DNA of 64,000 bases from Octopus sinensis (lineage: Eukaryota): assembly GCF_006345805.1 (NCBI RefSeq), contig NC_043001.1, positions 104,594,001 to 104,658,000 of the forward strand. The letters are read 5' to 3'. This document shows, one piece after another, positions 2,143 to 51,333 of the stretch. The first letter of the stretch is position 1. Every line of letters starts with the position of its first letter. The notes beneath the pieces are model-generated. The model saw only the letters and a list, made by a program, of their open reading frames with translations. It ran no database searches and was not told where the DNA came from. Both the position numbers and the translations under genes were made by a program.

Positions 2143-2207
2143 AGCAATTTTGTTTTATGACCAGGTTTCCAAGTGTTTTTTAAGCATTCATCCAATTTAA
2201 ATGCATC
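2143..2207 (-). CDS. UBA-like repeat gene, coding exon 17 of the model: DAFKLDECLKNTWKPGHKTKL(L); the gene continues beyond this exon
   Basis: Acceptor ttgaaattttag, donor CT|gtgagt, 65 nt, phase 0 to 2. It starts with xA, completing UBA-like repeat 4. Confidence 0.8.
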
Positions 2208-3164
2208 CTAAAATTTCAAGAAACAGACAATTGAAGTTTCAAATTGCAATTTTGATAATTATATTTGTAAATGCCGGTGTCACATAAAAAGCGCCCATGC
2301 TGGTGTCATGCAAAAGCACCTGTACCAGTGCCATGTAAAAAGCACACAGTACACTCTCTGAAGTGGTTGGCATTAGAAGGGGCATCCAGCTGTAGAAACC
2401 AAAACAGACAACTGGATCCTGGGCAGCTCTCCAGCTGGCCAACTCCTGTCAAACTATCCAACCTATGCCAGCATGGAAGACATATGTTAAGTGATGATGG
2501 TGATGAGGAGGAGGAGGAGGAGGAGGATTTGATTTCTTTCTGTGTTTGTTTATTTCATTTTTATCTTATTTTGTCATGTAACTTTAATTATTGATTATAA
2601 AGTAATCTGTCATGTATGTGTTGTAGCTGTTTAGCCCCGGGTCCACCTGGATTCAGCAATCTTCTATGTATCTTTCATCTTTTATCTCCTAGTTGTTTCA
2701 GTGATAAGACTGCGGTCATGCTTGGCACAACCTTGAAGAATTTTTAGTCAAATGAATTGACTCCAGTACTTTATTCATTTTTAAGTATGGTTCTTGTTCC
2801 ATTGTTGCCAAATCACTAAGTCACAATGATGTAAACACACCAACACTAGTTGACAAGTGGTAGTAGGGGGACAAATACAGACACAAAGACATATACATAT
2901 ATATAAAGACAATTTAGAAGATGGAGATATAAAATTAATACAATTCATTATCTGCAAAAATCTAATATATTCTCTTACAGCTGTTTCAATTTAGCCTAAA
3001 AGATTAAATTACAATAATTAAATCATTGTATTAGGCAAAATCTCATCAGAGGGGCAGAAAAGATATACCGTTAGGTTATTGCATGTTTTGTTTACAAATC
3101 ATCTCAGTTTGCTGAGATGATATATATATATATAATATATATATATATACACACAAACACACAC

Positions 3165-4195
3165 ATATATCATCATCATTGTCATCGTTTAATGTCTGCT
3201 TTCCCTGCTGGCATGGGTTGGGTGGCTTGACTGAGGGATGGCAAGCCAGTAAACTGCACCAGGCTCCAATATGATCTGGCATAGTTTCTACAGCTGGATG
3301 CCCTTCCTAATGCCAACCACTCTGAGAGTGTAGTGCCACTGGCATGAGGGCCAGTCACACAATACTAGCATCGATTACACTTGAATGGTGCTTTTTACGT
3401 GCCACGGGCACAGGACCAATCAGGCAGCACTGGCATCAACCATGCTCAAATGATGCTTTTTACGTGTCACTGGCACGGGAGCCAGTCAGGCGGCTCTGGC
3501 AACGATCACACTCGAATGGTGCTTTTTACCTGTCACTGGTACAGGACAAGTCAGGCTGCACTGGCATTGACCATGCTTAATTGGTGCTTTTTATGTGCCA
3601 CCGGCATGGGTGCCAATCAGGTAGTACTGTCATTGACCATGACAATGACTTCACTTGACTCAACAGGTCTTTGTAAGGGCAGTTTATTGCCCAATGATTG
3701 AAGGCTACTATTAAATGAGCCAGTTATGCTGCGCTGGCATAGGCCACAGTTATGGTCTCACTTGATTTGCCGGATTTTCTCAAGCACAGCTTATCTCCAA
3801 AGGTCTCGGTCACTTGTCATCACCTCCATGAGGCCCAACGTTCGAAGGTCATGTTTTCACACCTCATCCCAGGTCTTCCTGGGCTACCTTTTCCACAAGT
3901 TTCCTCAACCGCTAGGTTGTGACACTTTCAAACCTGACAATACCAGGGCAGGTGTCTCTCTTGCACACCACATCTGATGCTTCTTATGTTCAACGTTTTT
4001 CTCAGGGTGTAATGTTGTGCATGCACACTGACATTACACATCCAGCGGAGCATACTAGCTTCTTTCTCTGTAAACTTCCGCATGTCCTCAGCAGTCATGG
4101 TCAATGTTTCACTGCCATGTAGCATAGCTATTCGCACACATGCATCATACAGTCTACCTGAGTGAGAGGCCTTTGTCACCAGCAGAGGTACTTTA
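3165..4195 (-). mobile_element. RTE LINE 3' fragment (RT C-terminus, 3'UTR and (TGA)n tail)
   Basis: ORF 3928-4290 contains GRLYDACVRIAMLHGSET...LRWMCNVSVH, homologous to 7450-7700 of the RTE copy at 4898. The 3'UTR repeats follow, and an (ATC)n tail lies near 3170-3185. Confidence 0.9.
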
Positions 4196-4339
4196 TCCAG
4201 GATATATATATATATATATATATATATACTTATATGTATGTATGTTTGTATATATAAATATATATAATTGTTAAAGAGGACAACAAACATTAAGGCAAGA
4301 CAAATACCTCAAGTCATATACGTTATTATTATTGGAAGA

Positions 4340-4891
4340 ATTCCGCTATATCGGAAATCTACAATGGTTCCATAACTCCTGTCTTGGCTATGACTTTGGA
4401 GCCTTGCAAATGTATGATTTGAAACATGTTGGTAACTCCAGAGTTGTGTGTGTTTATGAAAGGGATGATGTTTTCTTTGTTTTTCGTTTTTGGAGTTCTG
4501 AGTTGTGTGATGTTCAGTTTCATTGCTCTTGAGATTCCATCTTTTATTAATTTGAGTGAGTACTTTTGTTCTAGTAAGAAGTTTTTAAGTTCATTTAGTC
4601 TTATTTGACGTGTTTGTGAGTCAATTACTATGCTGCATATGCGTCTTGCCATACTATAAGGAATGTTTCTTTTTATGTGGGATGGATGGCAAGAGTAGAA
4701 ATTTAAATATTGGTATGTGTCGGTTTTTTGTAGTAGATGTCTGTTGTGACGATGGAGTTGTGTATCTTGATGTTGATGTCTAGGAAGGGAAGTTCGTTGT
4801 GGCTGGTATCTATTGTGAAATTGATAAATGGGTGCAGTGTGTTGAGGATGTTGTGAAATGTTCATAGATCTTCTTCTGATCTATTCCAAAA
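4340..4891 (-). mobile_element. Penelope-like element, RT 3' part (left of the RTE insertion)
   Basis: Reads FIFWNRSEEDL*TFHNILNTLHPFINFTIDTSHNELPFLDI, then TDTYQYLNFYSCHPSHIKRNIPYSMARRI, typical of the PLE RT thumb. Confidence 0.88.
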
Positions 4892-4897
4892 GATGAA

Positions 4898-7800
4898 GTT
4901 CCTGAAAGGTAGGCCTGGCGAGATAGTCGAGATGCTTGAACGGAGACGTGTTGATGTATGTTGCATGCAAGAAATAAGGTGGAGAGGAGGATCTGCTAGG
5001 TTCCTCACAGGCAAGGAACACAGGTACAAGATTTTCTGGGCAGGGAACACTGACGGGGTTGGTGGCGTGGGTATACTTATCGCTGAGAAATGGATAGATA
5101 GAGTAATTGAGGTAATCAGAGTAAGTGACAGAATACTTAAGATTAGAATAGTGCTTCATAATAGATTAGCAACCATTATATCGGCTTATGCCCCTCAGCC
5201 AGGGCTACCCAATGGACAGAAAGACAGCTTCTATGACACCCTACTGCAGACCACCTCATTGACGAACGACAGGGACCTTCTCTTTGTGGCTGGTGATTTC
5301 AATGGGCATGTTGGACGACATGCTGGGGGCTTCCATGGCGTACATGGAGGCTACGGTTATGGTTCCCGCAACGAGGAGGGAACCAGGCTGCTGGAGTTCT
5401 GCGATGCGAATAGTCTTATGGTCTGCAACACTAACTTCAGGAAACCAACAAGCCACCTGGTCACCTACCAATCGGGCCGGCATACTAGCCAAATCGACTA
5501 CATCCTTGCCAGAAAAAGGGAAAGATGGCTGCTTATAAATGCCAAAACCTTCCCAGGCGAAGAATGCACCCCACAACATAGACTGGTAGTTAGTGACTTT
5601 AGGATCAGGACTAAGAGGGCAACTAGAAGACGACCAACATGGAGAAGAAGGGTCTGGAAGCTTAAAGACCCTGCGAATGGACAGAGATTTAGAGATATGT
5701 TACTTGAAGCCTTTGACAAAGTGGAAGGGGGTATAGCTACACATGGGGTAGAAGACAACTGGACGTTTCTGAGGGACAACCTGCTGAAAGCCGCTGACCA
5801 GATCTGTGGCTGGTGCAAAGTCCCCTTAAGACCCAAAATAACGTGGTGGTGGAACAATATTGTTGACAGGGCTATTAGACAAAAGAAACAGGCTTGGAAA
5901 GCCTGGAAGAACGGTGGTAGCAGGGAAGTGTACCAGACTGCCAGAAGGAAAGCTAGGAGACAGGTCTATCTAGCCAGAGGGGAAGCAGATAAGAGAAAAT
6001 TTGCCAATGTCCTGCACCGTGAGGATGAAAGACTTGAGGTATTTTGTGTTGCAAGACAGTGTGTGAGAGAGAATCGTGATGTGGTAGGAGAGAAATGTGT
6101 TCGCATGGAGGATGTTCACTTGCGCTAAATGAGGATGCAAAGAGAGAAGCTTGGAGACGCCACTATGAAAGGTTGCTGAATGAGGAAAATGAATGGGATA
6201 AAGAGAGTCTGCCGAATGTTGACCCAACAGAGGGACCAGCTATCCGAGTTGATAGTTCCGTGGTAGCTAAGGCAATTAGAAGCATGAAGACAGGGAAAGC
6301 ACCAGGCCCATCAGGAATTACTGCAGATGCTCAAAATATCTGGTAGTGTCGGCTATAGCATAGTCACCCGTATAGTTAACCAGGTGATACACGAAGGAGT
6401 CATACCCAATGACTGGTGTAGCAGCATAATAGTCAACTGCTACAAAGGTAAAGGTGACGCCCTTGATACAAATAACTACAGGGGCATCAAGCTGTTGGAT
6501 CAGGTAATGAAGGTTACGGAGAGGGTTATAGCCCAGTTAATTAGAGAGAGAGTTAGCTTAGATGATATGCAGTTTGGGTTCGTGCCAGGGAAAAGTACTA
6601 CTGATGCTATATTCCTGGTAAGACAGCTGCAGGAGAAATACCTGGCCAAAGGTAAGCCCTTGTACCTGGCTTTTGTTGAATTAGAGAAAGCCTTTGACAG
6701 GGTCCCCCGATCCCTTATCTGGTGGTCAATGAGGAAACTAGGGATAGATGAATGGTTAGTGAGAGCTGTGAGAGCCATGTACAGAGACGCTGCTAGTAAG
6801 GTGAGGGTTGGCAACGGGTACAGTGAAGAATTCTGGGTAGAGGTTGGGGTCCACCAAGGTTCAGTCCTCAGCTCCCTCCTATTTATCATAGTCCTCAGGC
6901 AATAACGGAAGAATTTAAGACAGGATGCCCCTGGGAGCTCCTCTATGCCGATGACTTGCTCTAATTGCTGAGTCACTATCAGAACTGGAGGAGAAGTTTC
7001 AGGTGTGGAAACAAGGATTAGAATCGAAGGGCCTTAGAATCAACCTAGCCAAAACCAAAGTCCTAATAAGTAGGAAGGTGGACCAACCACAAACGACTTC
7101 AGGTAGATGGCCCTGCTCGATCTGTAAAAAGGTGTAGGTAGAACTCTATAAGGTGCACCAAGTGTAAGCTATGGACACATAAGAGGTGCAGCAATGTCAA
7201 AGGTAGGCTAACTGGGAAGATAGTTTTCGTATGTGGCAGATGCTCAGGAGAAATAAACATGGAAATGTGCAGAGACCAACTTCTACCACGTTCCAGGGAG
7301 AAAACTAGAAGTAGTTGATAGCTTCCGCTACCTAGGAGACCAAGTCAGTAGCGGGGGGTGGTGTGCTGAAAGTGTAACTGCTAGAGTAAGAATAGCCTGG
7401 GCAAAGTTTAGAGAGCTCTTACCCCTGCTGGTGACAAAAGGCCTCTCACTCAGAGTAAAAGGCAGACTTATGATGCATGTGTACGTACAGCCATGCTACA
7501 TGGTAGTGAACATGGGCCGTGACTGCTGAGGATATGCGTAAGCTCGCAAGAAATGAAGCCAGTATGCTCCGATGGATGTGTAATGTCAGTGTTCATAATC
7601 GTCAGAGTGTAAGTACTTGAGAGAAAAGTTGAACCTAAGAAGCGTCAGTTGTGGTGTGCAAGAGAGACGGCTGCGCTGGTATGGTCATATGACGAGAATG
7701 GCTGAAGATAGTTGTGTGCAAAAGTGCTACACCCTAGCAGTTGAGGGAACCTGTGGAAGAGGTAGACCCAGGAAAACCTGGGACGAAGTGTGTGAAGCAC

Positions 7801-8670
7801 GACCTACGAACTTTAGGTCTCACCAAGGAAATGACTAGAGACCGAGACCTATGGAAGTATGCTGTGCGTGAGAAGACCGGCAAGACTAGTCTGGCCATAA
7901 CCCGTGGCCCCTACCTGGGACGTAGTCAGTCCACCTGTGTACCTTCCTTCTTGTGACACTTGTGAAGACCTGTTGAGGCAAGTGAAAATCAAACAAAATC
8001 TAAATAGATGAACATCAATGGAATTTGTATCTTTGTGGTACCAGTGCCGGTGGCACACAAGAAAACCATCCGAACGTGGCCGTAGCCAGTACCGCACCGA
8101 CTGGCCTCCATGCTGTGTGGGCACGTAACAATCACCATCCAATCGTGGCCGATCGCCAGCCTAATCTGGCTCCTGTGTGGGTGGCACATAAAAAACACCA
8201 TCGAGCGTGGTCGTCTGCTAGCCTTGTCTGGCACCTGTGTCGGTGGCAATAAAAACCACCATCCGAGCGTGGCCGTTCGCCAGCCTCGTCTGGCACCTGT
8301 GTCGGTGGCACATAAAAACACCATCCGAGCGTGGTCGTCTGCTAGCCTTGTCTGGCACCTGTGTCGGGCACATAAAAACATCATCCGAGCGTGGCCGTTC
8401 GCCAGCTTCGTCTGGCACCTGTGTCGGTGGCACATAAAAACACCATCTGAGCGTGGCCGTTCGCCAGCTTGTCTGGCACCTGTGTCGGTGGCAAATAAAA
8501 TCACCCACTACACTCTCGGAGTGGTTGGCGTTAGGAAGGGCATCCAGCTGTAGAAACACTGCCAGATCTGACTGGCCTGGTGCAGCCTTTGGGCTCCCCA
8601 GACCCCAGTTGAACCGTCCAACCCATGCTAGCATGGAAAGCGGACGTTAAATGATGATGATGATGATGAT
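4898..8670 (+). mobile_element. Near-full-length RTE-clade LINE (APE endonuclease, RT, PHD-like finger, VNTR-containing 3'UTR, (TGA)n tail), slightly 5'-truncated
   Basis: ORF 4893-6128 has the APE motifs VCCMQE, SAYAPQ, AGDFNGHVG, SQIDYIL and QHRLVVSD. ORFs 6095-6346 and 6327-6905 carry RT motifs (NYRGIKLL, QFGF, KAFDRVP, GVHQGSVLS), and LLYADD follows near 6940. The tail is GTTAAA(TGA)n at 8646-8670, with TSD GATGAA at 4892-4897 and 8671-8676. Confidence 0.95.
8050..8495 (+). repeat. Tandem ~62-bp repeat (about 7 units) in the RTE 3'UTR
   Basis: Unit is roughly GGTGGCACATAAAAACACCATCCGAGCGTGGCCGTTCGCCAGCCTCGTCTGGCACCTGTGTC, with two variants partly alternating. Confidence 0.9.
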
Positions 8671-8676
8671 GATGAA

Positions 8677-9370
8677 CCAGTCATCGAAGTAATGTTTCCA
8701 CTTTTTCTTGATGTCTTCTCTGAAATCATGTTCGAAGACTTTCCCTATTTCATCGTATAGTTTGTTCTCAAGTAAACCCATCACCAGGTTGGCATATGAA
8801 GGTGCGAATTTTGTTCCCATAGCCGTACCCTTTATCTGTTGGTATGTCTTGTTAAATGATACTGTGTTTTCTTCAAGTATTAATTGGGTGGCTTTGGTGA
8901 TAAAGTCTGTTTTGAAACATTTATCTATGAGTTCCTCATATTTTTTTACCCATTGTTTTATCACTTCCAGACCCAGGGTGTGTGGTATGTTTGTGTATAA
9001 GTTTGTGCCATCGAAGCTTGCAAGTATGGTGTCTTCTGGAACCGTATTTGGAATGTGTGTGAGGAAGTCTATGTCATCCCTTATGTAGCTAGGTATCAGT
9101 GGGCATAAAGGTTTGAGGAGTACATCTATGAAGTGGCTTAGTTGTTGGGTTGGCGCCTGGGGCCCTGCCACTATTAGTCTCATTGTGAGGTCTGTGGGCC
9201 TTTGTATTCTTATATAATGGTTCCTCAGTTCCTTAATAGCTCTCTGTATTTCAGAGCTTTTATGAACTTTAGGTAATCCATAAAAATTGCTTTCTTTGGT
9301 TCTTGAGTAGCATAAATAGTCTTTCTCCTTGTCTGTAAAGGATTCCTGGTATTCATTGACTAATGTTCCA
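8677..9370 (-). mobile_element. Penelope-like element, RT core (right of the RTE insertion)
   Basis: NFYGLPKVHKS...RLIVAGPQAPT...ASFDGTNLYTNIPH...QIKGTAMGTKFAPSYANL...HYFDDWF covers PLE RT motifs through the YxDD-equivalent. Confidence 0.92.
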
Positions 9371-10479: not shown

Positions 10480-10579
10480 TGTCATATTCCATTTGACTTT
10501 ATCAAGAATTCTCTTAGCCGTCGTCTCATCAGTACTGGTCCAATATGTGAATGCCAGTATTTTCATATCATTAGTTATT
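10480..10579 (-). CDS. UBA-like repeat gene, exon 16: (E)ITNDMKILAFTYWTSTDETTAKRILDKVKWNMT (UBA-like repeat 4)
   Basis: Acceptor tttgtttttttcag, donor ACA|gtaagt, 100 nt, phase 2 to 0, open frame. Confidence 0.88.
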
Positions 10580-11431
10580 CTGAAAAAAACAAATTTTTTT
10601 AAATTAAAAGTGTGCATGTGTGTGTGTAAATCTTTTATCTTTAACTTGTTCCAGTCATTAGACTGTGGCCATGCTGGGGCACTGCTTTGAAGAATTTTTA
10701 GTTGAATAAATTGACCTCAGTACATTTTTTTTTTGTTTTTTAACCCTTGTACTTAATTCTATTGATATCTTTTGTTGAACCACTAAGTTAATGGAATGTA
10801 AACACCAACACTGGATACCAAGTGGTAGTGGGGGTCAAACACACACACACACACAGATATACAATGGACTTCTTTCAGTTTTCTTCTACCAAAGCCATAC
10901 AAGGCTTTGGTCAGTCTGAGGCTACAGTAAAAAACACTTGCCCAAAGTGTGATGCAATGAGACCATGTAGTTGGGAAGTAAGTTTCTTGCCAGCTGGCTG
11001 GCTGTCCATTCATCAGGGTATGTGCTAGGATTGTTAAGTTAAGAATAGCCTTGTTTGATATAACAATGTCAGTTATCTCTACATATGCTGACGTGCAGGG
11101 CCTCAAGGAGACAAAGTGGCTGAGTTCCTTTCGAGTGTTGTGCCTCATGGAGGCAATGACTGAGACCTTTGACATTATGTCATGCTTGAGAAGAAGACCC
11201 ATCAAGCTGAGCAAAATTGTAGTCATGGCATATACTGGTGTCATCCAAATTGGCACATGTGCTGGTTGCTCGTAAAAGCACCCATTACACTCTCGGAATG
11301 GTTGGCGTTAGGAAGGACATCCAGCTGTAGAAAACTCAGACTGGAGGCTGGTGCAGCCTTCTAGTGTGACAGCCCGGTGAAACCATCCAACCCATCCCAG
11401 CATGGATGTCAGGCATTAAAGATGATGATGA

Positions 11432-13277
11432 TGCTCTGCATGCCAGACTCACAGATACTCAGATGGATCACTTCTATGAATCCTTTTTGAGGACTACCTC
11501 AATGACAAAAGACAATGTCATATTCATTGTGGCAGGGGACTTCAATGAACATGTTGGAAGACACCCCGATAGATTTCAGAGAGTGCATAGAGGTAACAGC
11601 TTTAGCTCTAGAAATGAGGAGGGGACAAGGTTTCTAGAGTTCTGTGATGCTCATGGCTTACTGGTCTGCAACATTCACTTCAGGAAACCTACCAAACATC
11701 TGATCACTTATCAACCTGATGGATTCGTCCTCACTAGACACAGGGACAGATGTATGCTCATAAATGCAAAGTCATTCCTGGGTGAAGAATGTACAACTGA
11801 ACATAGGCTAGTGGTTAGTGACTTCAGACTTAAGTCCAGAAGGATTCAGAGATGGAAGCTGATATGGAAAAGGAAGTTGTGGATGCTCAAAGATCCTTCA
11901 AAGAAGGAGAGATTTAGAGATGTTCTTAAAGCTTTCAATGAGAAGGAGGAAGAATTAGAAACATAAGATGTAGAGGACAACTGATTTCTGTGGTTGAAGT
12001 AAAGCCTCTGCCAGACCAAGGATGACATGGTGGTGGAACACTGACATTGACAAGGCCCTAAAAGGAAAGAAACAGCTATGGAATAGAGTGGGTAGCAAAG
12101 AATTATACCAGAAAGTTAAAAGGGAAGCTAAATGCCAGGTTTACCTGGATAAGGCAGAAGCAAAAAGGAAAAGGTATGCCAATGACCTGCAGCATGAAGA
12201 TTAGAGACTAGAGGTATTCTGGATTGTGAGACAGTGTGTCAAAAGAGAATTGAGATATTGTGGGAGAGAAGTGAGTATGGATGGATAATGGTATGCTTGC
12301 ACTTAGTGATTCATACAAGAAAGAGGCATGGAAAAGATACTATGCAAGGCTACTGAATGTGGAGAATGAATGGGGTAATGGAATTCCCAATAGAGGGACC
12401 AGCTGTCCTAGTGGACACCAGTATGGTAGATAAGGCAATTAAAGACATGATAGAAAACAGAGAAAGTCTTTGGTCTATCTGGAGATGCTCAAAATATCTG
12501 GTAAGGTAGGATATGGGCTAGTCACTCACCCACTTAGTTAATCAGGTTATTTAGAAAGGCATAATATCCAATGGCTGGAGTAGCAGCATTATTATTAGCT
12601 GCTACAAGAGTAAGGGAGATGCCTTAGAAGTAATTATAGACGCATCAAATTGCTGGACCAAGTGATGAAAGTTATGGAGAGAGTTATAGTCCAATTAATT
12701 AGGAACAAAATTAGACTAGATGAAATGTAGTTTGGCTTTGACAGAAGCAGAAACACTACTGGTACTATTTTGATAGTCAGGCAACTGCAAGAAAAGTATC
12801 TAGCTACGAATAAACCATTATACTTGGCATTTGTTGATCTGGAAAAACAAAAGCTTTGATAGAGTACCTTGCTATGTGATAAGGTGGGCTCTGAAGACAC
12901 AAGGAGTATACAAGTGACTTTTGAAAACTGTACAAGCCATGTACAGACATTCGGTGAGTAAAGTGAGAGTCAACTATGAGTACAGTGATGAATTTAGTGT
13001 ACAAGTAAGTGTTCATCAGGACTCAGTTCTCAGTCTTTTCCTTTTCATCACTGTCTTCCAGACCATAACGGAAGAATACAGCATTGGCTGACCCTGGGAA
13101 ATGCCCTCACAGCAGATTCTGTGGAAGCAAAACTTAGAATTGAAGGGCCTTAAGGTTAACTTAGCAAAGACTAAGGTTTCAGTAAGCAAGTAAACAGACA
13201 GGACCCTACTCCCTACTGGTAAATGGTTCTGTTTGATATGTAGGAAAAGTGTAAATAGGAATTCCATATGATGCACC
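11432..13277 (+). mobile_element. Decayed RTE LINE (endonuclease to RT), starting directly after the (TGA)n tail of another copy
   Basis: ORF 11406-11966 (VAGDFNEHVGRH...EHRLVVSDFR) and downstream fragments are collinear with about 5180-7160 of the 4898 copy. There are many stops and frameshifts. Confidence 0.9.
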
Positions 13278-13279
13278 CT

Positions 13280-13465
13280 TCTTATTCTAACGGCTACACT
13301 TTCAGTGCACCCACTCCTGCTACTAACTTGGTCACCTAGGTAAGGGAAGCTATCAACTACTTCTAGTTTTTCTCCCTGGAATGTGCAGAAATTGTTCTCT
13401 GTACATTTTCAGTGTTTATTGCTCCTGAGCATCTGCCACATACACAAACTATCTTTCCAGTTAGA
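13280..13465 (-). mobile_element. Inverted RTE segment continuing the 11432-13277 copy
   Basis: The reverse complement aligns by eye to about 7205-7390 of the 4898 copy (GKIV.VCGRCSG...KLEVVDSF.YLGD). Confidence 0.8.
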
Positions 13466-13876
13466 CTTCCATTATTTTCATTATCTATTTTTAATCTTAA
13501 TTTTTATCCTTTATCTTTATTCTTATATACTTTAATAAATTATTATCATTATTATTATTGTATTTAAATAAAAATAAAAATATTAATGCATGCGTGCACA
13601 TAACACACGCACACACACACACACACCACACACAATAAACACACTTTCGTCTGCTTAGTTTGTTGGAGTATTTTAAACGATCAACATATAAATTCTGTAA
13701 TGTCTATTTTACCCAGAAGATCTTCCACCCAGGGTGCTCAAATTGCAAACTTATATTATTATATATGTTTTGTAATTTAAATTGAGTGTAAATTAAAACA
13801 ATTGTAGGCAATTAATAAATAAATTTATATCCATTGAATCTCTGCATTTTCAAACTTATTAATACACATATATATA

Positions 13877-15710
13877 TCTCTATATATAAAACTGAAATGC
13901 GTTTTTACCGCTTGGATCGCTTTCAATGCCACTACATCCCGTCCGATTCGCTCCAAAATTAACAGGGACATGTAGAATGAGGTGACGATGCTCGTGGGCT
14001 ACCTTAGAAATCCCTATCTTAAAAGGTGTGGTTGCTAGGGGCCATCTTCCTCACTCACGCTATTTCCTCCAGTACCCTCTCACTCCTCTTCATTTGACAA
14101 GTCCACTCCTGTTATTTAATGTAAAGTCTTCCTCAAATCACTCTCTCGCTATTTCCTCTCTTCCAAGAACATTTTCACTCACTCTATCTCTTAGCTTCCC
14201 ATACATTTTACTCATGTATCTATCTGCGTTCATAGAGAGAAACAAATATTACATCGCCATCGCATTATATTGTCTACCTGTCAACACACACACACATATA
14301 TCTAATATTATATTTTTATTTTTATGTTTTTGTTTTTGGTTTTTTACGGTTTCATTTCCCTATTAGTGGTTTTATCTCTAATTTAATTTCTACAGCGTGC
14401 ACACACACCTATATGTGGCCCCAGTAGACCCGAATGAAATCGGGTTCTCTTCATCAAAATGTGAAAAGGGGTCTAGAATTATCATTGCCACAACTTATGT
14501 ATATGTCTTCCTCACTCACTCACTCTTTTTCCTAATGATAATTATCATCACCACCACCACCACCACCAACACACAATCATGACAATCTTTCTCTTAAAAC
14601 AAATCATGTTTACATTGCAAAATATTTCATTTTCCCGTCCACTCTTTCATATATCACCTTTTCTTTCTCGAGCTCTCTCTTTTTTCCCCGTCCCTATTTA
14701 TTCTACAACAAGTCTATCAATGACAGCCGCAAAAGTTTCAATATTCCTACTTCACCTCTTTCAGAAACGCAACAGATATTATTTTTTTTGCCGGGGTTAA
14801 AGCCCACTACATCCCGTCGGATTCACTCCAAAATTTACACCTTTTCTTTCTACCTCTAACTCCCCTTCAATTTCTCTTTATCTCCATTCATAAAGATAAT
14901 TATCATCGCCACCACCACCACCAACACACAATCTGGACAATCTTTCTCTTAAAACAAATCATGTTTACATTGCAACGACGTCTGCCACCTCCGCCGTCTC
15001 TATTTATGCCTGGATCATTCCATTCAACCCTTTGCTTTCCAAAACATTTAATGCACACATTAATGTTGAGTACTGCAGTTCGGTGAGATGCATACAATAC
15101 CTCTGCAAGTACATTAATAAGGGCGATGATATGGCCGTGTTCGTGTTCAGTGATGAAGACCTTAGACATGACAAAATTAAACAATTCGTTTTGGGTAGGT
15201 ATGTATCCTCCAATTATGCAGCGTGGCGCATTTTTGGATACGAGATTCATCTAAGCTCACCATCAGTTTTCCACCTGAATGTTCATTTACAGAAGAGACA
15301 GCTGTTTTACTTCACAGAGAAAAATGCACGTCAAGTCATTGAAAATCTAAAAGGGACTACGCTTACAGCATTTTTTAAATTGTGTTCAGTTGATGAGTTT
15401 GCTGCTACTCTCATTTACCCTGAAGTACCAGAATATTACACATACAACAACAATAATTGGAAGCGCAGGTCACATGGAACAGAACTTGACATTGGCCCGG
15501 TGTTTCTAGGAAGAACGTCATTGGGCGTGTGTATAATATTCATCCTACCAAACAGGAAATCTTCTTTTTGAGAATGCTGCTTCATGTAGTTACTGGACCA
15601 AAGTCTTTTGCTGATCTTCGCCACTTACAGGGAAGCATGTTTGAGGCGCGGACTTCTTCTCAATGATGACCACTTACACAGGACATTAGCAGAGGCCTCA
15701 AATTGTAACC
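13877..15710 (+). mobile_element. Helitron, internally deleted and 3'-truncated, with a RepHel fragment
   Basis: The 5' terminus a|TCTCTATATATAAAACTG is at 13877. Bases 15007-15571 encode AWIIPFNPLLSKTFNAHINVEYCSS...KYINKGDD...GRYVSS..AAWRIFG...LTAFFKLC...EVPEYYTY, the conserved post-Rep region. Internal duplications: 14540-14625 with 14897-14975, and 13927-13960 with 14803-14837. Confidence 0.88.
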
Positions 15711-16007
15711 TGCCATGGCAAATGCCACTTGCACATTAATTTCATGAGCAGGCCTTTCCATTGATCGGATCAACTGGAACATTCATCATCATAATCAATA
15801 GAATGCCAGTTTTGGTAGGTGTGATTTGAGGAATATTTGGTTGTTATTTGTAGCAGTTCAAATCTCTTCATGAAAGTGTTCATAATGGACAATGGTATAA
15901 CTGAAAAATATGTGTAGGATACACTTAGTCTTTTGAATGCAACCTACATGAACTGGGGATACACAAGAAAAAGAAATCACAACAGATCACACAAAAAGTT
16001 AACTTAC

Positions 16008-16105
16008 TCTTCTCCTTGCAATATTTTATGACCTTTTGGTAATGGAACCTCTTCACCAACTTTAGCTGCAGCGTATATTGATAATTCGAAGGACTTTTTA
16101 ATGTC
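16008..16105 (-). CDS. UBA-like repeat gene, exon 15: DIKKSFELSIYAAAKVGEEVPLPKGHKILQG(E)
   Basis: Acceptor ttttctttgtcag, donor GA|gtaagt, 98 nt, phase 0 to 2. Confidence 0.88.
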
Positions 16106-16552
16106 CTGACAAAGAAAATTTGATATGCTTTATCATGTACTATTAGAACTGTCAATGGTGAAATTGGTAGAATGGAAAATAAACTGACATTTGATATGTA
16201 GTAACATTCCTGTCTTTTATCTTTCCAAGATTGATAAAATATGTAACATTCAAATATTGGGTTGATATAATTGATTACATACTCCTATAAAATTGTGAAT
16301 TTGTGCCTACATTAGAAATCATTATTATGTACTCATACATACCAAACGTGCTCCATATAAAAGCAAATGTCATATGGTATAGAGAACCCTACCATTTTTC
16401 TAGTTGGTGAGCACATTATACCATCCAGTTTACCTAGCCATGGATGCCTTCGATAGAGTCCACTCTATAGCAAGTATTTAGACCAGGCTTTCAGCAAGGA
16501 GTTCCCAGGACCTACTGACACCGTTTACTTTTCACACTTCTCCAAAATATCA

Positions 16553-16744
16553 GTTTCAAATTTTGGCACAAGACCAGCAATTTCAAGTGAGGGAGTAAGT
16601 TGATTACATCAACCTCACTGCTCAACTGGTATTTATCATATCAACCCTGAAAGGATGAAAAGCTAAGTCAACCATGGCAGAATCTGAACTCAGAATATAG
16701 AGAAAGATGAAATACTGTTAAGCACTTGGCAAGCTAACTGCCTT
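16553..16744 (-). mobile_element. tRNA-derived SINE (family 'C' here) with a 19-bp TSD
   Basis: Flanked by ACACTTCTCCA(A/G)AATATCA at 16534-16552 and 16745-16763. Related copies lie at about 29925-30135, 34700-34840, 46625-46845, 48872-49040, 61530-62125 and 63535-63930. Confidence 0.85.
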
Positions 16745-16879
16745 ACACTTCTCCAGAATATCAAAAACTATAGCTAAACCCACTGGACAATTCTTCCCAC
16801 CCTCTTCCTTTCTAACATTTGTAGATTTCATTCCAATTAAAAATCTACTCATTATTTCTTACTAGCTTGCAAACTGCAC

Positions 16880-20673: not shown

Positions 20674-20743
20674 CTCATCTTTGAATGTTCTTTCTTTTTC
20701 TTTGAAAAGTTTGTAGGTCTTACAGAATTCTATCTGAGCAATC
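20674..20743 (-). CDS. UBA-like repeat gene, exon 14: (R)IAQIEFCKTYKLFKEKERTFKDE
   Basis: Acceptor cctctaattgcag, donor GAG|gtgagt, 70 nt, phase 2 to 0. Confidence 0.88.
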
Positions 20744-23816: not shown

Positions 23817-23839
23817 CTATCTCGGTCAAATGTAGAATC
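23817..23839 (-). CDS. UBA-like repeat gene, exon 13, a 23-nt microexon: DSTFDRD(R)
   Basis: Strong acceptor ttattctttttctccag and donor AG|gtaagt. It provides the phase 0 to 2 change needed between its neighbours. Confidence 0.78.
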
Positions 23840-28141: not shown

Positions 28142-28229
28142 CTCTTCCATTCTTTCCACTATATCTTTAAGTGGTTCACTGTCTCGATATATCTTGTAAA
28201 CATTGTTCAGAAACTCTTCCATCTTTTCC
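28142..28229 (-). CDS. UBA-like repeat gene, exon 11: (R)EKMEEFLNNVYKIYRDSEPLKDIVERMEE
   Basis: Acceptor gtttactttcag, donor GAG|gtaatg, 88 nt, phase 2 to 0. Confidence 0.88.
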
Positions 28230-30158: not shown

Positions 30159-30226
30159 CTGAACTCATAATGATACACTCCATATGTTTTGTAGGCAACA
30201 TAGAGATCACTTAAATGAAGAGCAAC
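30159..30226 (-). CDS. UBA-like repeat gene, exon 10: VALHLSDLYVAYKTYGVYHYEF(R)
   Basis: Acceptor gctatctttccag, donor AG|gtatgt, 68 nt, phase 0 to 2. Confidence 0.88.
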
Positions 30227-31736: not shown

Positions 31737-31842
31737 GATAAAATTCCAATCTGCTTTCTTCAGAACATATTCTGCTTCACCATTTGTAAAATGATATCTT
31801 TCTCGTAACACATAAAACAGATCAAGTTGTGATTCTGGTTCA
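31737..31842 (-). CDS. UBA-like repeat gene, exon 9: (P)EPESQLDLFYVLRERYHFTNGEAEYVLKKADWNFI (UBA-like repeat 3)
   Basis: Acceptor gtttttcttctag, donor ATC|gtatgt, 106 nt, phase 2 to 0. Confidence 0.9.
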
Positions 31843-32717: not shown

Positions 32718-32851
32718 GGTCCAGTATCTTCATAGTATCTGCATACAACTTGGTCATCAACAATATCAATATACTGAGAGGGATATCTTTTCATCTGCTC
32801 AGCTGCATTAGAAACCTCCATATTATCTAATTCAGCAAGGTTTTGAGCAAC
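32718..32851 (-). CDS. UBA-like repeat gene, exon 8: VAQNLAELDNMEVSNAAEQMKRYPSQYIDIVDDQVVCRYYEDTG(P)
   Basis: Acceptor tttctgtgtattgaag, donor CC|gtaagt, 134 nt, phase 0 to 2. Confidence 0.9.
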
Positions 32852-38148: not shown

Positions 38149-38251
38149 CTGTAAATTCCAATTACATTTATCCAAAAAGAACTTAGCTTTGCCCACATCC
38201 AGTCTTGGAAGTTTTCCAATTAAGGCGTCCATTTTCATTTCCTTGTCATCC
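38149..38251 (-). CDS. UBA-like repeat gene, exon 7: (K)DDKEMKMDALIGKLPRLDVGKAKFFLDKCNWNLQ (UBA-like repeat 2)
   Basis: Acceptor ttttaaaattaattacag, donor CAG|gtactg, 103 nt, phase 2 to 0. Confidence 0.88.
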
Positions 38252-39017: not shown

Positions 39018-39747
39018 ATATGTGGTACGAATAGATGAGGACAGCTGTGTGAAAAAGTGTCACACCCTAGCAGTTGAGGGAATCTGTGGAAGAGGTAGAC
39101 CCAGGAAGACCTGGAATGAGGAGGTGAAGCACAACCTTCGAACATTGAGCCTCACAAAGGCAATGACTAGTGACCAAGACCTTTGGAAATATGCTGTGTT
39201 TGAGAAGACCCAGCAAGTTAAGTGACACCATAACCCATGACCTATGCCAGCGGTGTAACTAGCCTACTTATGCATTGCTTGCAAAGACCTATCGAGGCAA
39301 GTGAAATCACAATCAAAATCAAATTCACAGACATAGCCAATAACAGCACCACCTGACTGACACCCATGCCAGTGGAATGTTAAAAGCACCATCCGAACAT
39401 GATCGTTGCCAGGGCTGCTGACTGGCTCCTGTGCCGGTGGCATATAAAAAGCACCATTCAAGTGTGATCGTTACCAGCATGGCCTTACTGGCTCCTGTGC
39501 AGGTGGCACATAAAAAACACCATTTGAGCGTGGCCGTCACCAGTACCACCTGACTGGCCCTCGTGCTGGTGGCACGTAAAAGCACCCACTATACTCTCAG
39601 AGTGGTTGGAATTAGGAAGAGCTTCCAACCGTAGAAACTCTACTAGATCAGATTGGAGTCTGGTGCAGCCATCTGGCTTGCCAGTCCTCAGTCAAACCGT
39701 CCAACTCCTGCCAGCATGGAAAGCAGACGTTAAATGATTATGATGAT
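39018..39747 (+). mobile_element. RTE LINE 3' fragment with about four 3'UTR repeat units and tail
   Basis: ORF 39022-39225 (DEDSCVKKCHTLAVEGICGRGRPRKTW) matches 7700-7880 of the 4898 copy. The copy ends GACGTTAAATGATTATGATGATG. Confidence 0.9.
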
Positions 39748-41225: not shown

Positions 41226-42784
41226 TTATGACCTCCATACCTTGAGGGTACGCCCAGGCACTTTCCACCATTTATCTCTCTCTTCTTTACTCTACCATCC
41301 CATCTTATGCTCTGATCCTCATTCCTTGTGAGTATACCTGGCACTTTGCCACCACCCCTCTCCTGTGCATTCTCTTGCACACTTGCTGTCTTCCACTCTC
41401 TCTGTCTTTCCCTCACTTTTCCCTCTGGTTGGATAACCACATATTCCCTCTACAGCAGTACACGTGTTTCTGCCCTCATTCTTGATCATTCTCTTTCTCT
41501 CCTTCTCTTACTCTTCCCTAATCATGTATCTCCTTTACAGCAGCACACCTACTTTTGTCCTCATTCTTGTTAACTCTCTTTCTCTCTCTCTCTCTGATTG
41601 GGTAACCATGTACCTCATCTACAGCAAGACACCCTTCTTCTTAAAAACTTTTAGCATCTGATATAAGATCACTTCCTCCAATTACTCCTTCCCTCCCCAA
41701 AATTCTTTGTCTTGCAAGTTACTTGGAGATCCTGCTAGTGTTGGTGTCCTGTAAAAAGTATCCAGTCCACACTGTAAAGTGGTTGGCATTTGGAAGGGAT
41801 CCAGCTGTAAAAACAATGCCACAAAGCTGACCTTGCCTGTGCTAGTGCCATATAAAAAGCACACAGTCAACTATGTGGGGTGGTTGATGTCAGAAAGGGC
41901 ATCCAGCCTTAAAAACCAGCCAAAACACACACAGAAGTTTAGTGTAGTTTTCTGCCAGGCCAGCTCCTATTAAACCATCCAACCCATTCAAGGTAGGCGT
42001 TAAACAATGATGATGCTGATGATGTTAGTATTTGTAAAAAACCAACACAGTTAAAACACTATGTGCAATAAAATCTGCTTAATGTTTACAGGTGTTGTTC
42101 AGTTATTTCTTCATGCAACCCAAGGAATATATTTTCATTTAATCAGTCATTTACCTCATACCAGCCAACAATAACAACAACAGCCCACAAGTCCATTTAA
42201 TACTGCCATAATATAATTCCTAGCTTCTTCAAAATACTGCTTTGTATCACTGCCTTCATTTTCCCTTCTCCACATAGCTAACTACTGAAATATTTGATCC
42301 CACTATATTTTTTCATCCCCACCCCCGCTTTACTATGAAATTCAGTTTGTTTACTTGCTTCATTGTGTGTTTTGGTATATCACAATCCATTGAAGCTATG
42401 GGGACCTCCAGTTTTTCTTTTCATGAGTGATTACCAGTCCATTCTAATATCTCACTGAAACATTCAGAAAATAATACTCACCCTTCATCTCCTTCTTTTA
42501 AAAGGATTATTTCATTATCACCTTCAACAGAAACGCACTCCCCAGGCATAAGAATGTGTTCCTCAGACTCTTTAGATGTATGCTTGACTATTCTCAAGTG
42601 TCTGGACAAAGTCTACAAAACAATATGCATTACACAAGTTAAACAGAATAATCGAAGAAAATTGATGATTGCCTGCTTCTGCCTACAACAAATGTAAAAT
42701 GTTCAACGAAAATAATCATTAGGCTAATGATGTCATGTATAAAACACTTATGCTGGTTCGATGAATAAAGCATCCATACTGATG

Positions 42785-43045
42785 CCATGTTAAAAGCATC
42801 CATGCTAGTGCCATGTAAAAAGCACTGGTGCTGGTGCCATACAAAAAGCACTGGTGATGGTGCCACATAAAAAGCACTGGTGATGGTGTCACATAAAAAG
42901 CACTGGTGATGGTGCCACATGAAAAGTACTGGTGCTGGCTCCATGTAAAAAGCACTGGTGTGCCACGTAAAAATCACTGGTGCTCATTTTATATAAAAAG
43001 CACTGGTGATGGTTCTGCATATAAAGTACTCATATTGCCACATAA
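42785..43045 (+). repeat. Tandem ~26-bp repeat (about 10 units) at the 5' end of an RTE-tail element
   Basis: Unit GATGGTGCCACATAAAAAGCACTGGT, running into the standard ...GCACCC..CACT...GTGGTTGGCATTA.GAAG.GCATCCAGC 3' module. Confidence 0.85.
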
Positions 43046-43334
43046 AAAGCACCCAGACCACTGTAAAGTGGTTGGCATTAAGAAGAGCATCCAGCCACAG
43101 AAACCATGCCAAAACAGATAATTGGAGCCTGGTACAGCATTCTGGCTGGTCAGCTCCTCTCAGACCATCCAACCCATGCCAGCATGGAAAATAGATGCTT
43201 AATGATAATGACAATGGTGATGACGACGACAATGATGATAACAATGGTGATGACGACGACAATGATGATGACAATGAAGCTAATGATTTTGTTCTCTTCA
43301 CTATGGGTTTAACTTCCATTTATTACAATTTCTT

Positions 43335-45749: not shown

Positions 45750-46480
45750 AATCATCATCATCATCATCGTTTAGCGTCCGTTTTCCGCGCTAGCACGGGT
45801 TGGATGGTTCGACCGGGGTCTGGGAAGCCAGGGGCTGCACCAGGCTCCAGTCTGATCTGGCAGTGTTTCTACAGATGGATGCCCTTCCTAACGCCAACCA
45901 CTCCACGAGTGTAGTGGGTGCTTTTTATGTGCCACCTGCACAGGTGCCAGGGGAATCTGGCATTGGCCACGATCGGTTGGTGCTTTTAACGTGCCACCGG
46001 CACAGAAGCCAGCCAAGGCGGCGCTGGCAACGGCCACGTTTGGATGGTGCTTTTTATGTGCCACCGACACAGAAGCCAGTCGAGGCGGTGCTGGCATCGG
46101 CCACGTTTGGATGGTGCTTTTCATGTGCCACCGGCACAGAAGCCAGTCAAGGCGGCGCTGCCAATGGCCACATTCGGATGGTGCTTTTTATGTAGAATAC
46201 GAATAGCCTGGGCAAAGTTCAGAAAGCTCCTACCCCTACTGGCGACAAAGGGTCTCTCGCTCAAAGTGAAAGGTAGATTGTATGACGCATGTGTGCGAAC
46301 TGCCATGCTTCACGGTAGTGAAACATGGGCTGTGACTGCAGAGGACATGCGTAGACTTGAAAGGAATGAAGCTAGCATGATCCGCTGGATGTGTAATGTC
46401 AGTGTGCGCGCACGACAGAGGGTAAGCACCTTGAGAGAAATGCTGGACATAAGAAGCATCAGATGTGGTGTGCAAGAGAA
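45750..46480 (-). mobile_element. RTE insertion with an inverted 5' segment
   Basis: 45750-46190 is the 3'UTR and (TGA)n tail on the minus strand. 46195-46480 is RTE coding sequence (RIAWAKFRKLLPLL...GRLYDACVR) on the plus strand. Confidence 0.8.
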
Positions 46481-47964: not shown

Positions 47965-48021
47965 CAAGTCTTTTGCATTCTCATCCTGAACAAGTTCTTT
48001 ATTGAATTGTTCGGTAGCAGC
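47965..48021 (-). CDS. UBA-like repeat gene, exon 4: AATEQFNKELVQDENAKDL
   Basis: Acceptor ttttatttttccatag, donor TTG|gtaggt, 57 nt, phase 0 to 0. Confidence 0.85.
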
Positions 48022-48079
48022 CTATGGAAAAATAAAATAAAATTATTATACCAACATTTATTTTTCTTGTATTAGTTAC

Positions 48080-48397: not shown

Positions 48398-50105
48398 ATA
48401 TGTTTATAGTATCACTTACATTCATGTATCAGGTTATATAATCTATCTTTTACTTGTTTCATTAATCAGACTGTGGCCATGCTGGGGTACTACCTTGAAC
48501 AATTTTAATCAACCCCAGAACTTTTCTTTTAAACTTGGTGCTTATCTTATTAGTCTCTTTTGCCGAACCATTAAGTTATGGGGACATAAACATGCTGACA
48601 TTGGTTTACAAGTGGGGGGGGGAACAAACACAGATACAAAGACACACACACACGTGTGTGCCCCCCCCTTACACACACACATACACACATACAGAGTATG
48701 CAAGAAAGGATCTGGAAACCCAGAAGATGACTTTCAGTCATGGATTGTGCATAACAAATAAAGGATAGAATTGGTATTACACTAATTGTACCATTTACAA
48801 TTATTTCAATAAAAAATGGTTGACAAATCATATACTTTTGAAAACATAGAAGATAATGATATTCTTTTCTATTCTAGGCACAAGGCCCGAAGTTTTTGGG
48901 GAGGGTGCCAGTTGATTAGATTGACCCTAGTATGCAACTGGTGCTTAATTTATCAACCCTGAAAGGATAAAAGGCAAAGTCGACCTTGGTGGAATTTGAA
49001 CTCAGAACATAAAGACAGATAAAATACTGCTAAGCATTTCGCCTAGCTCGCCACCTTATAGGAGATAATGATATTGTCATATTGATTATATAAAATGTAT
49101 TATATAATGGTGAAGACACGTGGCTCAGTGGTTAGAGTATCTGGCTTACAATCAAAAGATCTAAGTTTAATTCCCAGCAGCATGATGTGTCATTCAGCAA
49201 GACACTTTATGTTGCTCCACTTCACTCAGCTGTCAGAAATAAGTAGTACCTGTATTTCAAAGGGCCAGATTTGAGTACTCAACCAGTTGCACATTAATTC
49301 TATGAGCAGACTGTCATGTTGATCGGATCAACTGGCACACTCATCATCACAACTGACAGAGTGCCAATATTGTACAATAACTGACTGATAGTAAGCACCC
49401 TTCATTCGGTGGGTGATATGCAAAGCACCCTTCAATTATTGGATGATATGCTGTGCCTGTGAAAACCTGTCAAACCAAGTGAAATCATATGCATGGCTGA
49501 TGTCAGTGTCAGGCCGGTGGCATGTAAAATACACTCACTACACTTTTGGAGTGGTTGGCATTAGGAAGGGCATCCAACCATAGAAACCTTGCCAAATCAG
49601 ATTGGAAACTGGTGCAGCCCACCAGCTTACCAGTTTTCAGTCAAACCGTCTAACACATGCCACCAGGAAAGCAGATGTTAAATGACGATGATGATGATAG
49701 TCATAACTTTTGTGAGCAATTAGACATAGTTACAAAATGAATGAGTTTACTTATATATGGGCACATGAGAGATGTTTAATTAATTAAGATAGCAGGGCTT
49801 ATTGTTAGAAATGTCAATAAAGAAAAAGTGGATTGCAATGTAATTGTATTTCTTAACAAGAACATTTTACAAGTTCCTTTCATTAATCAATCCATAAATT
49901 CAGACATTTGTCTAGTTGAGACAGTGAAACATTTCAAAATGTATAATAAATTCATCCACTCTGATCTCTATTTGACAAACTGTTAGACTACATGACATAA
50001 AAGTGATTCAGCATAAACACACATATATACATAAATCAAAAGCAAGCTTGTTAGCCTAACAAGTAAGACTGCAGTAGTAGACAAATAAAATGAAAAGTGA
50101 CTTAC

Positions 50106-50226
50106 TTTAATATCATAATCGTTTTTCTCCAAATAATATTTAGCTCGACCATAATCAATCCAATTGTCTATTGAGAACCGTTTAACAACCAGAGCTTTGT
50201 TAAACCCCATCTTGTTCCAGTGTTTG
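50106..50226 (-). CDS. UBA-like repeat gene, exon 3: (S)KHWNKMGFNKALVVKRFSIDNWIDYGRAKYYLEKNDYDIK (UBA-like repeat 1)
   Basis: Acceptor attaattgtccacag, donor AAA|gtaagt, 121 nt, phase 2 to 0. Confidence 0.87.
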
Positions 50227-50477
50227 CTGTGGACAATTAATAAAGAGACATAATACAGCTATTTAATTCTGAGAAATAAAGAAATTAGTGTTAAATTTTT
50301 ATTTTTTAAATGGCAGATTAATGTTGATGTAGAATATAGTTTGATGAACAATGATGTTATAAATCAAAAATTAAAATTAAAAATTAAAGTCTTTGGCAAA
50401 AAAAATTCAATGTTAATGTACATAAAGGAACATATATAATTATACATACACAATAAAACCCAGATTCATCCACTTAC

Positions 50478-50530
50478 CTTTCAACAAATTTTTTTAAACA
50501 TTTAAACCAACTCCTACTAGCTTCAGCTCC
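50478..50530 (-). CDS. UBA-like repeat gene, candidate exon 2: GAEASRSWFKCLKKFVE(S)
   Basis: Strong donor AAG|gtaagt and weaker acceptor gtaccagccctgatag. It is 53 nt, phase 0 to 2, and fits both neighbours. Confidence 0.55.
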
Positions 50531-50544
50531 CTATCAGGGCTGGT

Positions 50545-51035
50545 ACAAACAGTATCTCCCTCAAGCTTGGCTTTTTCAGAAATAAATGCATCGACCTAAT
50601 CATTAAGCAGGCTCTGGCTCAGGTTAATATCCCCTCAGTTCTGGAGCTAGCAGTATTATCCAGAAGTGATGGGAAGAGACCAAATGGTCTTCTACTTTGT
50701 CCCTATGTAAGAGGTAGGTGTCTCATCTGGGATATCACAGTCTGTGGATCTTTTGCTCCCTCTCACATCCTGGATGATGTGGTAAATGGGAGGGTCACTG
50801 TTTCTGTAGGTGAACAGAACAAAATCTTTAAGTATCAGAACTTGTCAGTGAATCATTTCTTCCAGCCTGTGGAGTTTGAGATGTTTGGAAGAGCTAGGCT
50901 GCTAACAAAAAAGCTCTTGTCATCATTGGAGGCTCACCTTACTGAGGTGCCAGGTAATGCCCATGAGGGTGTTTGGCTATTCCAATGTCTTAACCTTGTC
51001 ATCACCTGTTGTAATGCTGTATGTTGACTTGCTTC
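50545..51035 (+). mobile_element. CRE-like non-LTR retrotransposon 3' fragment (restriction-like endonuclease), copy 1
   Basis: GFFRNKCIDLIIKQAL...IPSVLE...RSDGKRPNG...LIWDITV...EQNKIFKY.NL...FQPVEFEMFG matches the RLE (PD..D) region of CRE-clade elements. Confidence 0.8.
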
Positions 51036-51252
51036 AGTAAGTTCCACTGAACCTTGTGATGTGCAACCAACTGAAGCACTCAGTATTGAATTCATGTTTT
51101 TTCTTTCTTCCTCTTTATCTCCTTTTTCTTTATTTCTTCACTCATGCTTCTGTTTTTCTTTGGTTTGGAATTTGTAAGCAAGTGCTTACCAACCACTCCT
51201 GCATTTATTGTATACAGTGCTCAAGTGCACTAGAATTCATCAGATAACTTAC

Positions 51253-51333
51253 ACTGATGCCACTTTCTCTCATAGAAATAATCTTTTTACTTTTACAGCA
51301 ATGTTCTTTCATGCAGACATTGGAAAATATTTT
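51253..51333 (-). CDS. UBA-like repeat gene, candidate exon 1 of the coding chain: KIFSNVCMKEHCCKSKKIISMRESGIS (may contain the start ATG)
   Basis: Acceptor catttgttttttag, donor AGT|gtaagt, 81 nt. Only this frame is open end to end, and it has two in-frame ATGs. Confidence 0.6.

Follow-up and report, generated by a model that had tools for sequence, protein, structure and literature searches.

The window analysed here, a 64,000-nucleotide stretch of the Octopus sinensis genome (NC_043001.1, positions 104,594,001 to 104,658,000 of the forward strand), contains the 5′ portion of LOC115212235. This minus-strand gene extends over ~310 kb in GCA_006345805.1 and encodes a protein of 1,935 amino acids (aa), in which four modules that very likely adopt the UBA fold precede a long series of 33-aa repeats. 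The source gene was identified by an exhaustive HMMER search, in which a draft peptide from anchored exons was compared with 1.84 billion cluster representatives. The draft matched the 1,935-aa protein (XP_036358878.1 / A0A7E6EU62, "uncharacterized protein LOC115212235 [Octopus sinensis]") with an E-value of 3.8e-145 and just three other sequences, namely two partial Argonauta hians proteins and a 75-aa Logan fragment. Protein searches with a 250-aa draft, and then with a module profile, in a word-indexed system had returned no relatives and missed the gene's own product, which a 1,267-aa query recovered; an empty result from such a system carries little weight when the eukaryotic query is short or spliced. 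The initial annotation regarded the gene as hidden, but it is already present in RefSeq and UniProt, where the UBA_4 and UBA_8 matches are precomputed, and it is independently annotated in O. vulgaris as a model of 2,076 aa, which starts 12 residues earlier and differs from O. sinensis at 2 of the 382 window-encoded residues. The interval first proposed, 2143-51333, cut the gene at both ends, as it runs from at least 62541 down to past window position 1. The window thus covers the end of a 5′ untranslated region (UTR) exon and 13 coding exons for residues 1-382, and residues 383-1935 are encoded outside. A literature search with the gene identifiers found no papers, and LOC115212235 is a publicly annotated gene without any study describing its architecture.

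The exon map was obtained by mapping XP_036358878.1 back onto the window with a backtracking spliced aligner. All 13 coding exons have GT-AG boundaries, total 1,148 nucleotides (nt), and translate exactly to residues 1-382. In the order of transcription, the exons are as follows.

62541..62557, minus strand: 3′ end of the 5′ untranslated exon (...CTTCAGTTGAGTGGAAG, followed by gtaaga), matching "LQLSG+AG" of the O. vulgaris model
50106..50226, minus strand: start-codon exon, module 1 helices 1-2 (MGFNKALVVKRFSIDNWIDYGRAKYYLEKNDYDIK); ATG at 50210, Kozak context AACAAGATGG; coding part 50210-50106
47965..48021, minus strand: module 1 helix-3 exon (AATEQFNKELVQDENAKDL); 57 nt, phase 0→0
42482..42612, minus strand: linker and hairpin-like exon (TLSRHLRIVKHTSKESEEHILMPGECVSVEGDNEIILLKEGDE); 131 nt, phase 0→2; Argonauta counterpart 134 nt, 0→2
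38149..38251, minus strand: module 2 helices 1-2 (DDKEMKMDALIGKLPRLDVGKAKFFLDKCNWNLQ); 103 nt, phase 2→0; UBA_4 21.6 bits; Argonauta match, E 2.5e-13
32718..32851, minus strand: module 2 helix 3 and conserved beta-hairpin (VAQNLAEL...QYIDIVDDQVVCRYYEDTG); 134 nt, phase 0→2; Argonauta exon likewise 134 nt, 0→2
31737..31842, minus strand: module 3 helices 1-2 (EPESQLDLFYVLRERYHFTNGEAEYVLKKADWNFI); 106 nt, phase 2→0; Argonauta exon 106 nt, 2→0; no Pfam match alone
30159..30226, minus strand: module 3 helix 3 and hairpin-like stretch (VALHLSDLYVAYKTYGVYHYEF); 68 nt, phase 0→2; Argonauta IAEDLVLTYEAFENFGVYHEES, E 4e-4
28142..28229, minus strand: linker exon (EKMEEFLNNVYKIYRDSEPLKDIVERMEE); 88 nt, phase 2→0
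23817..23839, minus strand: 23-nt micro-exon (DSTFDRD); phase 0→2; flanks ttctttttctccag and gtaagtac; good splice sites, in the public coding sequence
20674..20743, minus strand: linker exon (RIAQIEFCKTYKLFKEKERTFKDE); 70 nt, phase 2→0
16008..16105, minus strand: linker exon (DIKKSFELSIYAAAKVGEEVPLPKGHKILQGEE); 98 nt, phase 0→2
10480..10579, minus strand: module 4 helices 1-2 (ITNDMKILAFTYWTSTDETTAKRILDKVKWNMT); 100 nt, phase 2→0; UBA_8 21.2 bits and UBA_4 19.5 bits; Argonauta match, E 2.5e-7
2143..2207, minus strand: module 4 helix-3 exon (DAFKLDECLKNTWKPGHKTKL); 65 nt, phase 0→2; GT donor at its end

Since the last of these exons ends at a donor, the coding sequence runs on past the window start. 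At the other end, the ATG at 50210 lies in a strong Kozak context, and the orthologous exon of Argonauta contains an in-frame TGA two codons ahead of its own ATG. The 5′ exon ending at 62541 (GGAAG followed by gtaaga) was placed by homology to the O. vulgaris model and splices to the acceptor at 50226 across a first intron of ~12.3 kb (62540-50227); because it contains an in-frame TGA and no ATG, it is assigned to the 5′-UTR in O. sinensis. The annotations of these two sister species differ in their start codon, and translation of the O. vulgaris model begins in the 5′ exon, giving the N-terminus MLQLSGS-KHWNK-MGFNK. Within the gene interval, ~12,500 open fragments of 23-134 nt bounded by AG and GT occur on the gene strand and ~13,300 on the opposite strand; a phase-consistent chain therefore does not by itself count as evidence. 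The initial annotation had chained 17 exons (1310 nt, ~436 codons) from the raw sequence into a multi-exon gene. The gene is real and the chain was largely right, with 13 of the 17 exons standing, including those of the extreme lengths of 23 and 134 nt, whereas the public coding sequence accounts for 382 window codons (1,148 nt), and about four unanchored 5′ exons (51333-50227) find no support: this interval shows no conservation in Argonauta, the ATG lies at 50210, and 62541 is where the true 5′ exon ends. A 56-nt exon at 47722-47667, tried as a means to mend the phase of module 1, was rejected as well, the public model having 42612-42482, and a candidate fifth module at 28665-28600 was dropped on inspection.

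Each of the four modules contains one copy of the motif A-x3-L-x4-[WY][ND]-h (h, hydrophobic), and the corresponding peptides are encoded at 50147-50106, 38190-38149, 31778-31737 and 10521-10480 of the minus strand. A pyrimidine-rich AG precedes every motif exon, which opens one base into a split codon and closes in phase 0 at an adjoining GT (donors gtaagt, gtactg, gtatgt and gtaagt), and the next exon of the module supplies AA, VA, VA or DA together with the remainder of helix 3. The position of the phase-0 intron is constant, three residues past W/Y in every module. In the six-frame translation of the window, the motif occurs exactly four times, and all four occurrences are colinear on one strand; the null expectation has a mean of 0.35 and a maximum of 3 in 200 simulations. 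As a profile of all four modules is circular, leave-one-out profiles were used instead. The omitted module ranked first in three of the four tests and second in the fourth among ~2,794 other open fragments, with E-values that are each marginal (0.001 to 0.44), and the identity between modules is just 18-26%. The leave-one-out ranks and the motif count demonstrate that the four modules are a real repeat family, and the colinear motif peptides and the phase 2→0 exons with an identically placed intron, both described previously, were recovered here; the exon arrangement is kept in Argonauta as well. Modules 2-4 are each encoded by a phase-symmetric exon pair (2→2), in which a 2→0 exon specifies helices 1-2 and a 0→2 exon specifies helix 3 plus a short stretch. 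This stretch is predicted to form a beta-hairpin in module 2, with a predicted local distance difference test (pLDDT) score of 54-68, and appears hairpin-like by eye in modules 3 and 4. Module 1 begins at the ATG, and its helix-3 exon is 0→0. Linkers and hairpin stretches, about 20-90 residues long, separate the modules, which plausibly originated by duplication of the exon pair.

Regarding the fold of the modules, Pfam analysis of the full 1,935-aa protein detected UBA_4 (PF14555; 33.8 bits, cutoff 21.8) and UBA_8 (PF22566; 29.3 bits, cutoff 26), with no other credible family, and the draft peptide scored 41 bits against a Pfam UBA-type family. Comparison of the draft and the full protein with the PDB by phmmer gave nothing useful, and matches were obtained with the module profile alone. 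This profile of eight sequences (four Octopus and four Argonauta modules) matched the Ede1 UBA (2g3q) with an E-value of 0.0017 and the p47 UBA (1v92) with an E-value of 0.0093, followed by full-length p47, TDP2 and NXF2. AlphaFold2 modelling of module 2 from a nine-row family alignment yielded helices at residues 2-13, 19-28 and 33-56, with a pLDDT of 84-87 over residues 1-40, and a hairpin of lower confidence (strands 59-65/68-74); for a 191-aa stretch, AlphaFold run on the single sequence reached a pLDDT of just 43, a low confidence. The Foldseek list for module 2 consisted almost entirely of UBA-fold domains, superposing at 0.8-1.5 Å over 36-39 residues, with TDP2-ubiquitin (6q00), ubiquitin-bound Cbl-b, TNK1, FAF1, FAF2, Dcn1, Mud1, OTUD7A and Nxf2 among the matches. 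The assignment of the head modules as four diverged three-helix UBA-fold units is well supported by these profile comparisons and the predicted structure, and it agrees with the UBA-like character first suggested for the repeats.

Relatives of the protein were confined to O. sinensis, O. vulgaris, a related octopus (Logan contigs) and Argonauta, and none were found outside the octopods in searches of 1.84 billion cluster representatives and 5.8 billion clusters. As judged from sequence similarity, LOC115212235 is lineage-restricted to octopods among the databases searched, a feature that the initial annotation had raised as a possibility. The Argonauta hians locus is annotated as four partial models, and modules 1-4 are all present. 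Its exons of 100, 134, 106 and 103 nt (phases 2→0, 0→2, 2→0 and 2→0) keep the sizes, intron positions and phases, and the Tyr/Val-rich hairpin stretches are kept too (QHIDLVDGNITFRFFE vs QYIDIVDDQVVCRYYE; ...FGVYHEES vs ...YGVYHYEF). The introns of Argonauta and Octopus do not align, and once the comparison is limited to single-copy colinear matches, it is the UBA-like exons that reach significance. Exon 1 differs from that of a related octopus contig (Logan SRR11869385, ~12% intron divergence) by 10 substitutions, 8 of them nonsynonymous, and six of the seven amino-acid differences of exon 1 (50106-50210) fall in its helix-2 half. The signature residue of module 1 is Tyr in O. sinensis (NDYD) and Trp in the related octopus (NNWD) and in Argonauta (ANWN).

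The Argonauta hians locus also contains, at 12915-17776, five annotated 51-nt phase 0-0 exons encoding KAAEALQKDIDHKKRDL or KAAEAKLEGIGDKNEDL. They have identical flanks (gtttttctctag ... gttagt), fall between module 1 and the linker exon that follows, and have no counterpart in Octopus. The set has the appearance of a recent tandem exon duplication specific to this lineage.

Downstream of the window-encoded head, residues 384-1437 comprise 31 tandem copies of a 32-33-aa unit (AKKLAEKYFxGxEGYxxFxxEL), followed by a unique region without a Pfam match and a ~290-aa tail rich in Ala, Glu and Lys. The O. vulgaris model contains 35 copies of the unit; this could represent a true change in copy number or an assembly or annotation difference in a repeat-rich 310-kb gene. 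(EAAAK)n-type sequences are helical, and the Ala/Glu/Lys-rich tail is therefore expected to be helical. The UBA-like head would sit on an elongated scaffold consisting of 31-35 tandem 33-aa helix-loop-helix repeats and the tail. The initial annotation had advised looking downstream for a catalytic C-terminal domain; Pfam detects none in the full 1,935-aa protein, in which the 33-aa repeats, the unique region and the tail are found instead. Likewise, when all open fragments of 38 aa or more on the minus strand (42983 to 16) were scanned with Pfam, just reverse transcriptase (RT) of long interspersed nuclear elements (LINEs) and the UBA-like exons were recovered.

The remainder of the window (38% G+C) is rich in transposable elements. 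LINE remnants recognized by Pfam lie in the introns of the gene at 4893-6905 (plus strand; APE-type endonuclease and RT), 8650-9183 (minus strand; RT fragment) and 11406-11963 (plus strand; endonuclease fragment), and the LINE RT of the window shares 68% protein identity with a copy in the Argonauta locus. At 3333-3641, 8120-8505, 39344-39586, 42779-43052 and 45917-46193, a 62-67-nt unit (GGTGCTTTTTA.GTGCCAC.GGCACAGG...) is repeated in tandem arrays, which are accompanied by elements resembling short interspersed nuclear elements (SINEs), with the translation "LDALPNANHS". Both families are scattered over the Argonauta locus too and swamp unfiltered cross-species comparisons. A large tandem array at 28850-29831, with units of 72-78 and 153-159 nt and a palindromic core (CTATAGTCAACACTGTTGACTATAG), lies inside the intron that separates the exon at 30159 from the one at 28229. 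At 49120-49178 on the plus strand, a marginal Rfam match to transfer RNA (tRNA; 29.9 bits against a gathering score of 29), which ARAGORN did not confirm, is probably a tRNA-derived SINE head.

Setting the ligand aside, the identity of the gene and the UBA fold of its head modules are together judged highly probable, and several observations have to be weighed against the overall interpretation. Pfam scores fall when the modules are taken one by one: module 2 reaches 21.6 bits for UBA_4 (cutoff 21.8), module 4 reaches 21.2 bits for UBA_8 and 19.5 bits for UBA_4, module 1 shows a weak TAP_C match (13 bits), and module 3 has no Pfam match. The alignment-based AlphaFold2 fold covers module 2 alone, from nine alignment rows, and the Foldseek E-values for this module are all at least 0.26. 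RefSeq XP_ entries are computed models, and the literature search found no experiment or paper on the function of LOC115212235. Moreover, the ratio of nonsynonymous to synonymous changes (pN/pS) in exon 1/module 1, calculated from just 10 substitutions, is ~0.94. Such a value between close species, together with the failure of the initial two protein-database searches (draft and module profile) to find relatives and the lack of literature on the gene, might be expected if the exons were non-functional, that is, decaying duplicated exons or an annotation artefact. Against this explanation, two species keep an uninterrupted reading frame of 1,935-2,076 aa, 13 of 13 junctions are canonical, and frame, splice sites and signature residues are kept in modules that are just 18-26% identical. 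The exons, phases and start codon are also kept in the Argonauta orthologue, though its introns have diverged past alignment, and a non-functional set of exons is considered very improbable.

A different explanation would accept the gene but regard the UBA resemblance as superficial, the modules being diverged members of the same lineage-specific helical repeat, encoded by exon pairs, from which the 33-aa body is assembled, with no relation to UBA function. The borderline or nil scores of single modules would suit this idea. In Argonauta, moreover, the alternating 2→0 and 0→2 phases run into the body repeats, where exons of 34 and 65 nt make up one 33-aa repeat, and a phase-0 intron lies 13 residues past a conserved Ala ("AK") in modules and body repeats alike. 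The retrieved Argonauta DNA provides one clean exon pair of body repeats, so that the comparison covers one or two body units, and the shared intron register is a lead rather than a result. In contrast, the hidden Markov model of the 33-aa body repeat finds nothing in residues 1-383, and hhalign of the module profile against the body-repeat profile gives a probability of 5.7%. The top PDB matches of the module profile are all of the UBA type, whereas the body-repeat profile has no UBA matches in the PDB, and AlphaFold and Foldseek yield a UBA bundle. A superficial resemblance is accordingly thought unlikely. Still more speculative, and improbable in our estimation, is a scheme in which the whole 1,935-2,076-aa protein would be one duplication series of an alternating-phase exon pair, with the UBA module reduced to the two-helix 33-aa unit and 31-35 repeats stacked as a continuous SOUBA-like solenoid of overlapping UBA-type bundles; the product, with four free UBA modules at its head, would be a giant octopod-specific protein that reads chains of ubiquitin or ubiquitin-like proteins polyvalently.

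The array of UBA-fold modules could act as a multivalent protein-interaction head, for which ubiquitin or a ubiquitin-like protein would be the most likely ligand. Tandem UBA arrays in other proteins bind ubiquitin (PMC3314968), and the best sequence and fold matches of the modules are the ubiquitin-binding UBAs of Ede1, p47, TDP2 and Cbl-b, the latter two solved with ubiquitin. However, the canonical ubiquitin-contact loop of UBA domains, M/L-G-F/Y (PMC3314968), is absent in all four modules of both Octopus, where the aligned triplets are N-W-I, P-R-L, Y-H-F and T-S-T, and Argonauta, where they are K-H-I, D-H-I, F-S-L and T-N-T. The missing signature would be explained if the modules bind a partner other than ubiquitin or NEDD8, such as FG-repeat or other peptides in the manner of NXF TAP-C, or if they make intramolecular or self-association contacts within the scaffold. 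TAP_C is the sole Pfam affinity of module 1, NXF2 UBA-type domains appear among both the sequence and the fold matches, and helix 2 of module 1 changes fast between close octopus species. Such a non-ubiquitin partner is a serious candidate at somewhat below an even chance, and ubiquitin specifically, proposed from sequence, is put forward as a tentative ligand that we would sooner doubt than assume.

The UBA fold is a familiar domain type, and a model of the gene is public; the architecture, that is, four discrete UBA-fold modules ahead of 31-35 unclassified 33-aa repeats and an Ala/Glu/Lys-rich tail, is undescribed in the literature found. LOC115212235 offers a clean cephalopod example of a lineage-restricted giant gene that would have been made by exon-pair duplication, and if its modules do bind ubiquitin chains, the protein would be an unusual multivalent reader.

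Among known systems, the p97 adaptors NSFL1C/p47, FAF1, FAF2/ETEA and UBXN7 (UBA_4, PF14555) likewise carry a ~40-residue three-helix bundle at the N-terminus and have the helix-2 motif A-x3-L-x4-W-[ND]-h-x2-A in common with the octopus modules. The UBA-like structures of FAF1 and FAF2 superpose on module 2 at 1.2-1.5 Å, and, as mentioned above, the p47 UBA 1v92 was matched by the module profile. The adaptors differ in the position of the Gly in the helix 1-2 loop and in combining one UBA-type domain with UBX (and SEP, UAS or UIM), whereas the octopus protein has four modules and, by Pfam over 1,935 aa, no UBX, SEP or PUB domain; the lack of UBX also sets it apart from SAKS1, another UBA-UBX p97 adaptor. 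The Ede1 UBA (2g3q) is the best sequence match (LEKCNWDLEAA vs LDKCNWNLQVA). In contrast to the octopus modules, however, the UBAs of Ede1, TDP2, Cbl-b, TNK1 and Mud1 possess the M/L-G-F/Y-type ubiquitin-contacting loop, and they are single domains in otherwise unrelated architectures. A TDP2-type EEP phosphodiesterase domain was not detected in the octopus protein by Pfam, and the EEP matches in the window are LINE elements on the plus strand, with no others. DCN1 (UBA and PONY), NXF TAP-C and the UBA-like domain of OTUD7 share the fold class with the octopus modules; Pfam detected no PONY/Cullin-binding, LRR/NTF2-like or OTU domain in the 1,935-aa protein, and the scan of minus-strand fragments described above (42983 to 16, 38 aa or longer) gave no PONY/Cullin_binding match. 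In UBAP1 SOUBA and in linker-connected multi-UBA proteins (PMC3314968), as in the octopus protein, several UBA units occur per polypeptide, an arrangement that could give multivalent ubiquitin binding. SOUBA consists of seven helices that form three overlapping UBAs with shared helices (PMC3314968), whereas the octopus modules are discrete and linker-separated, each with its own exon pair.

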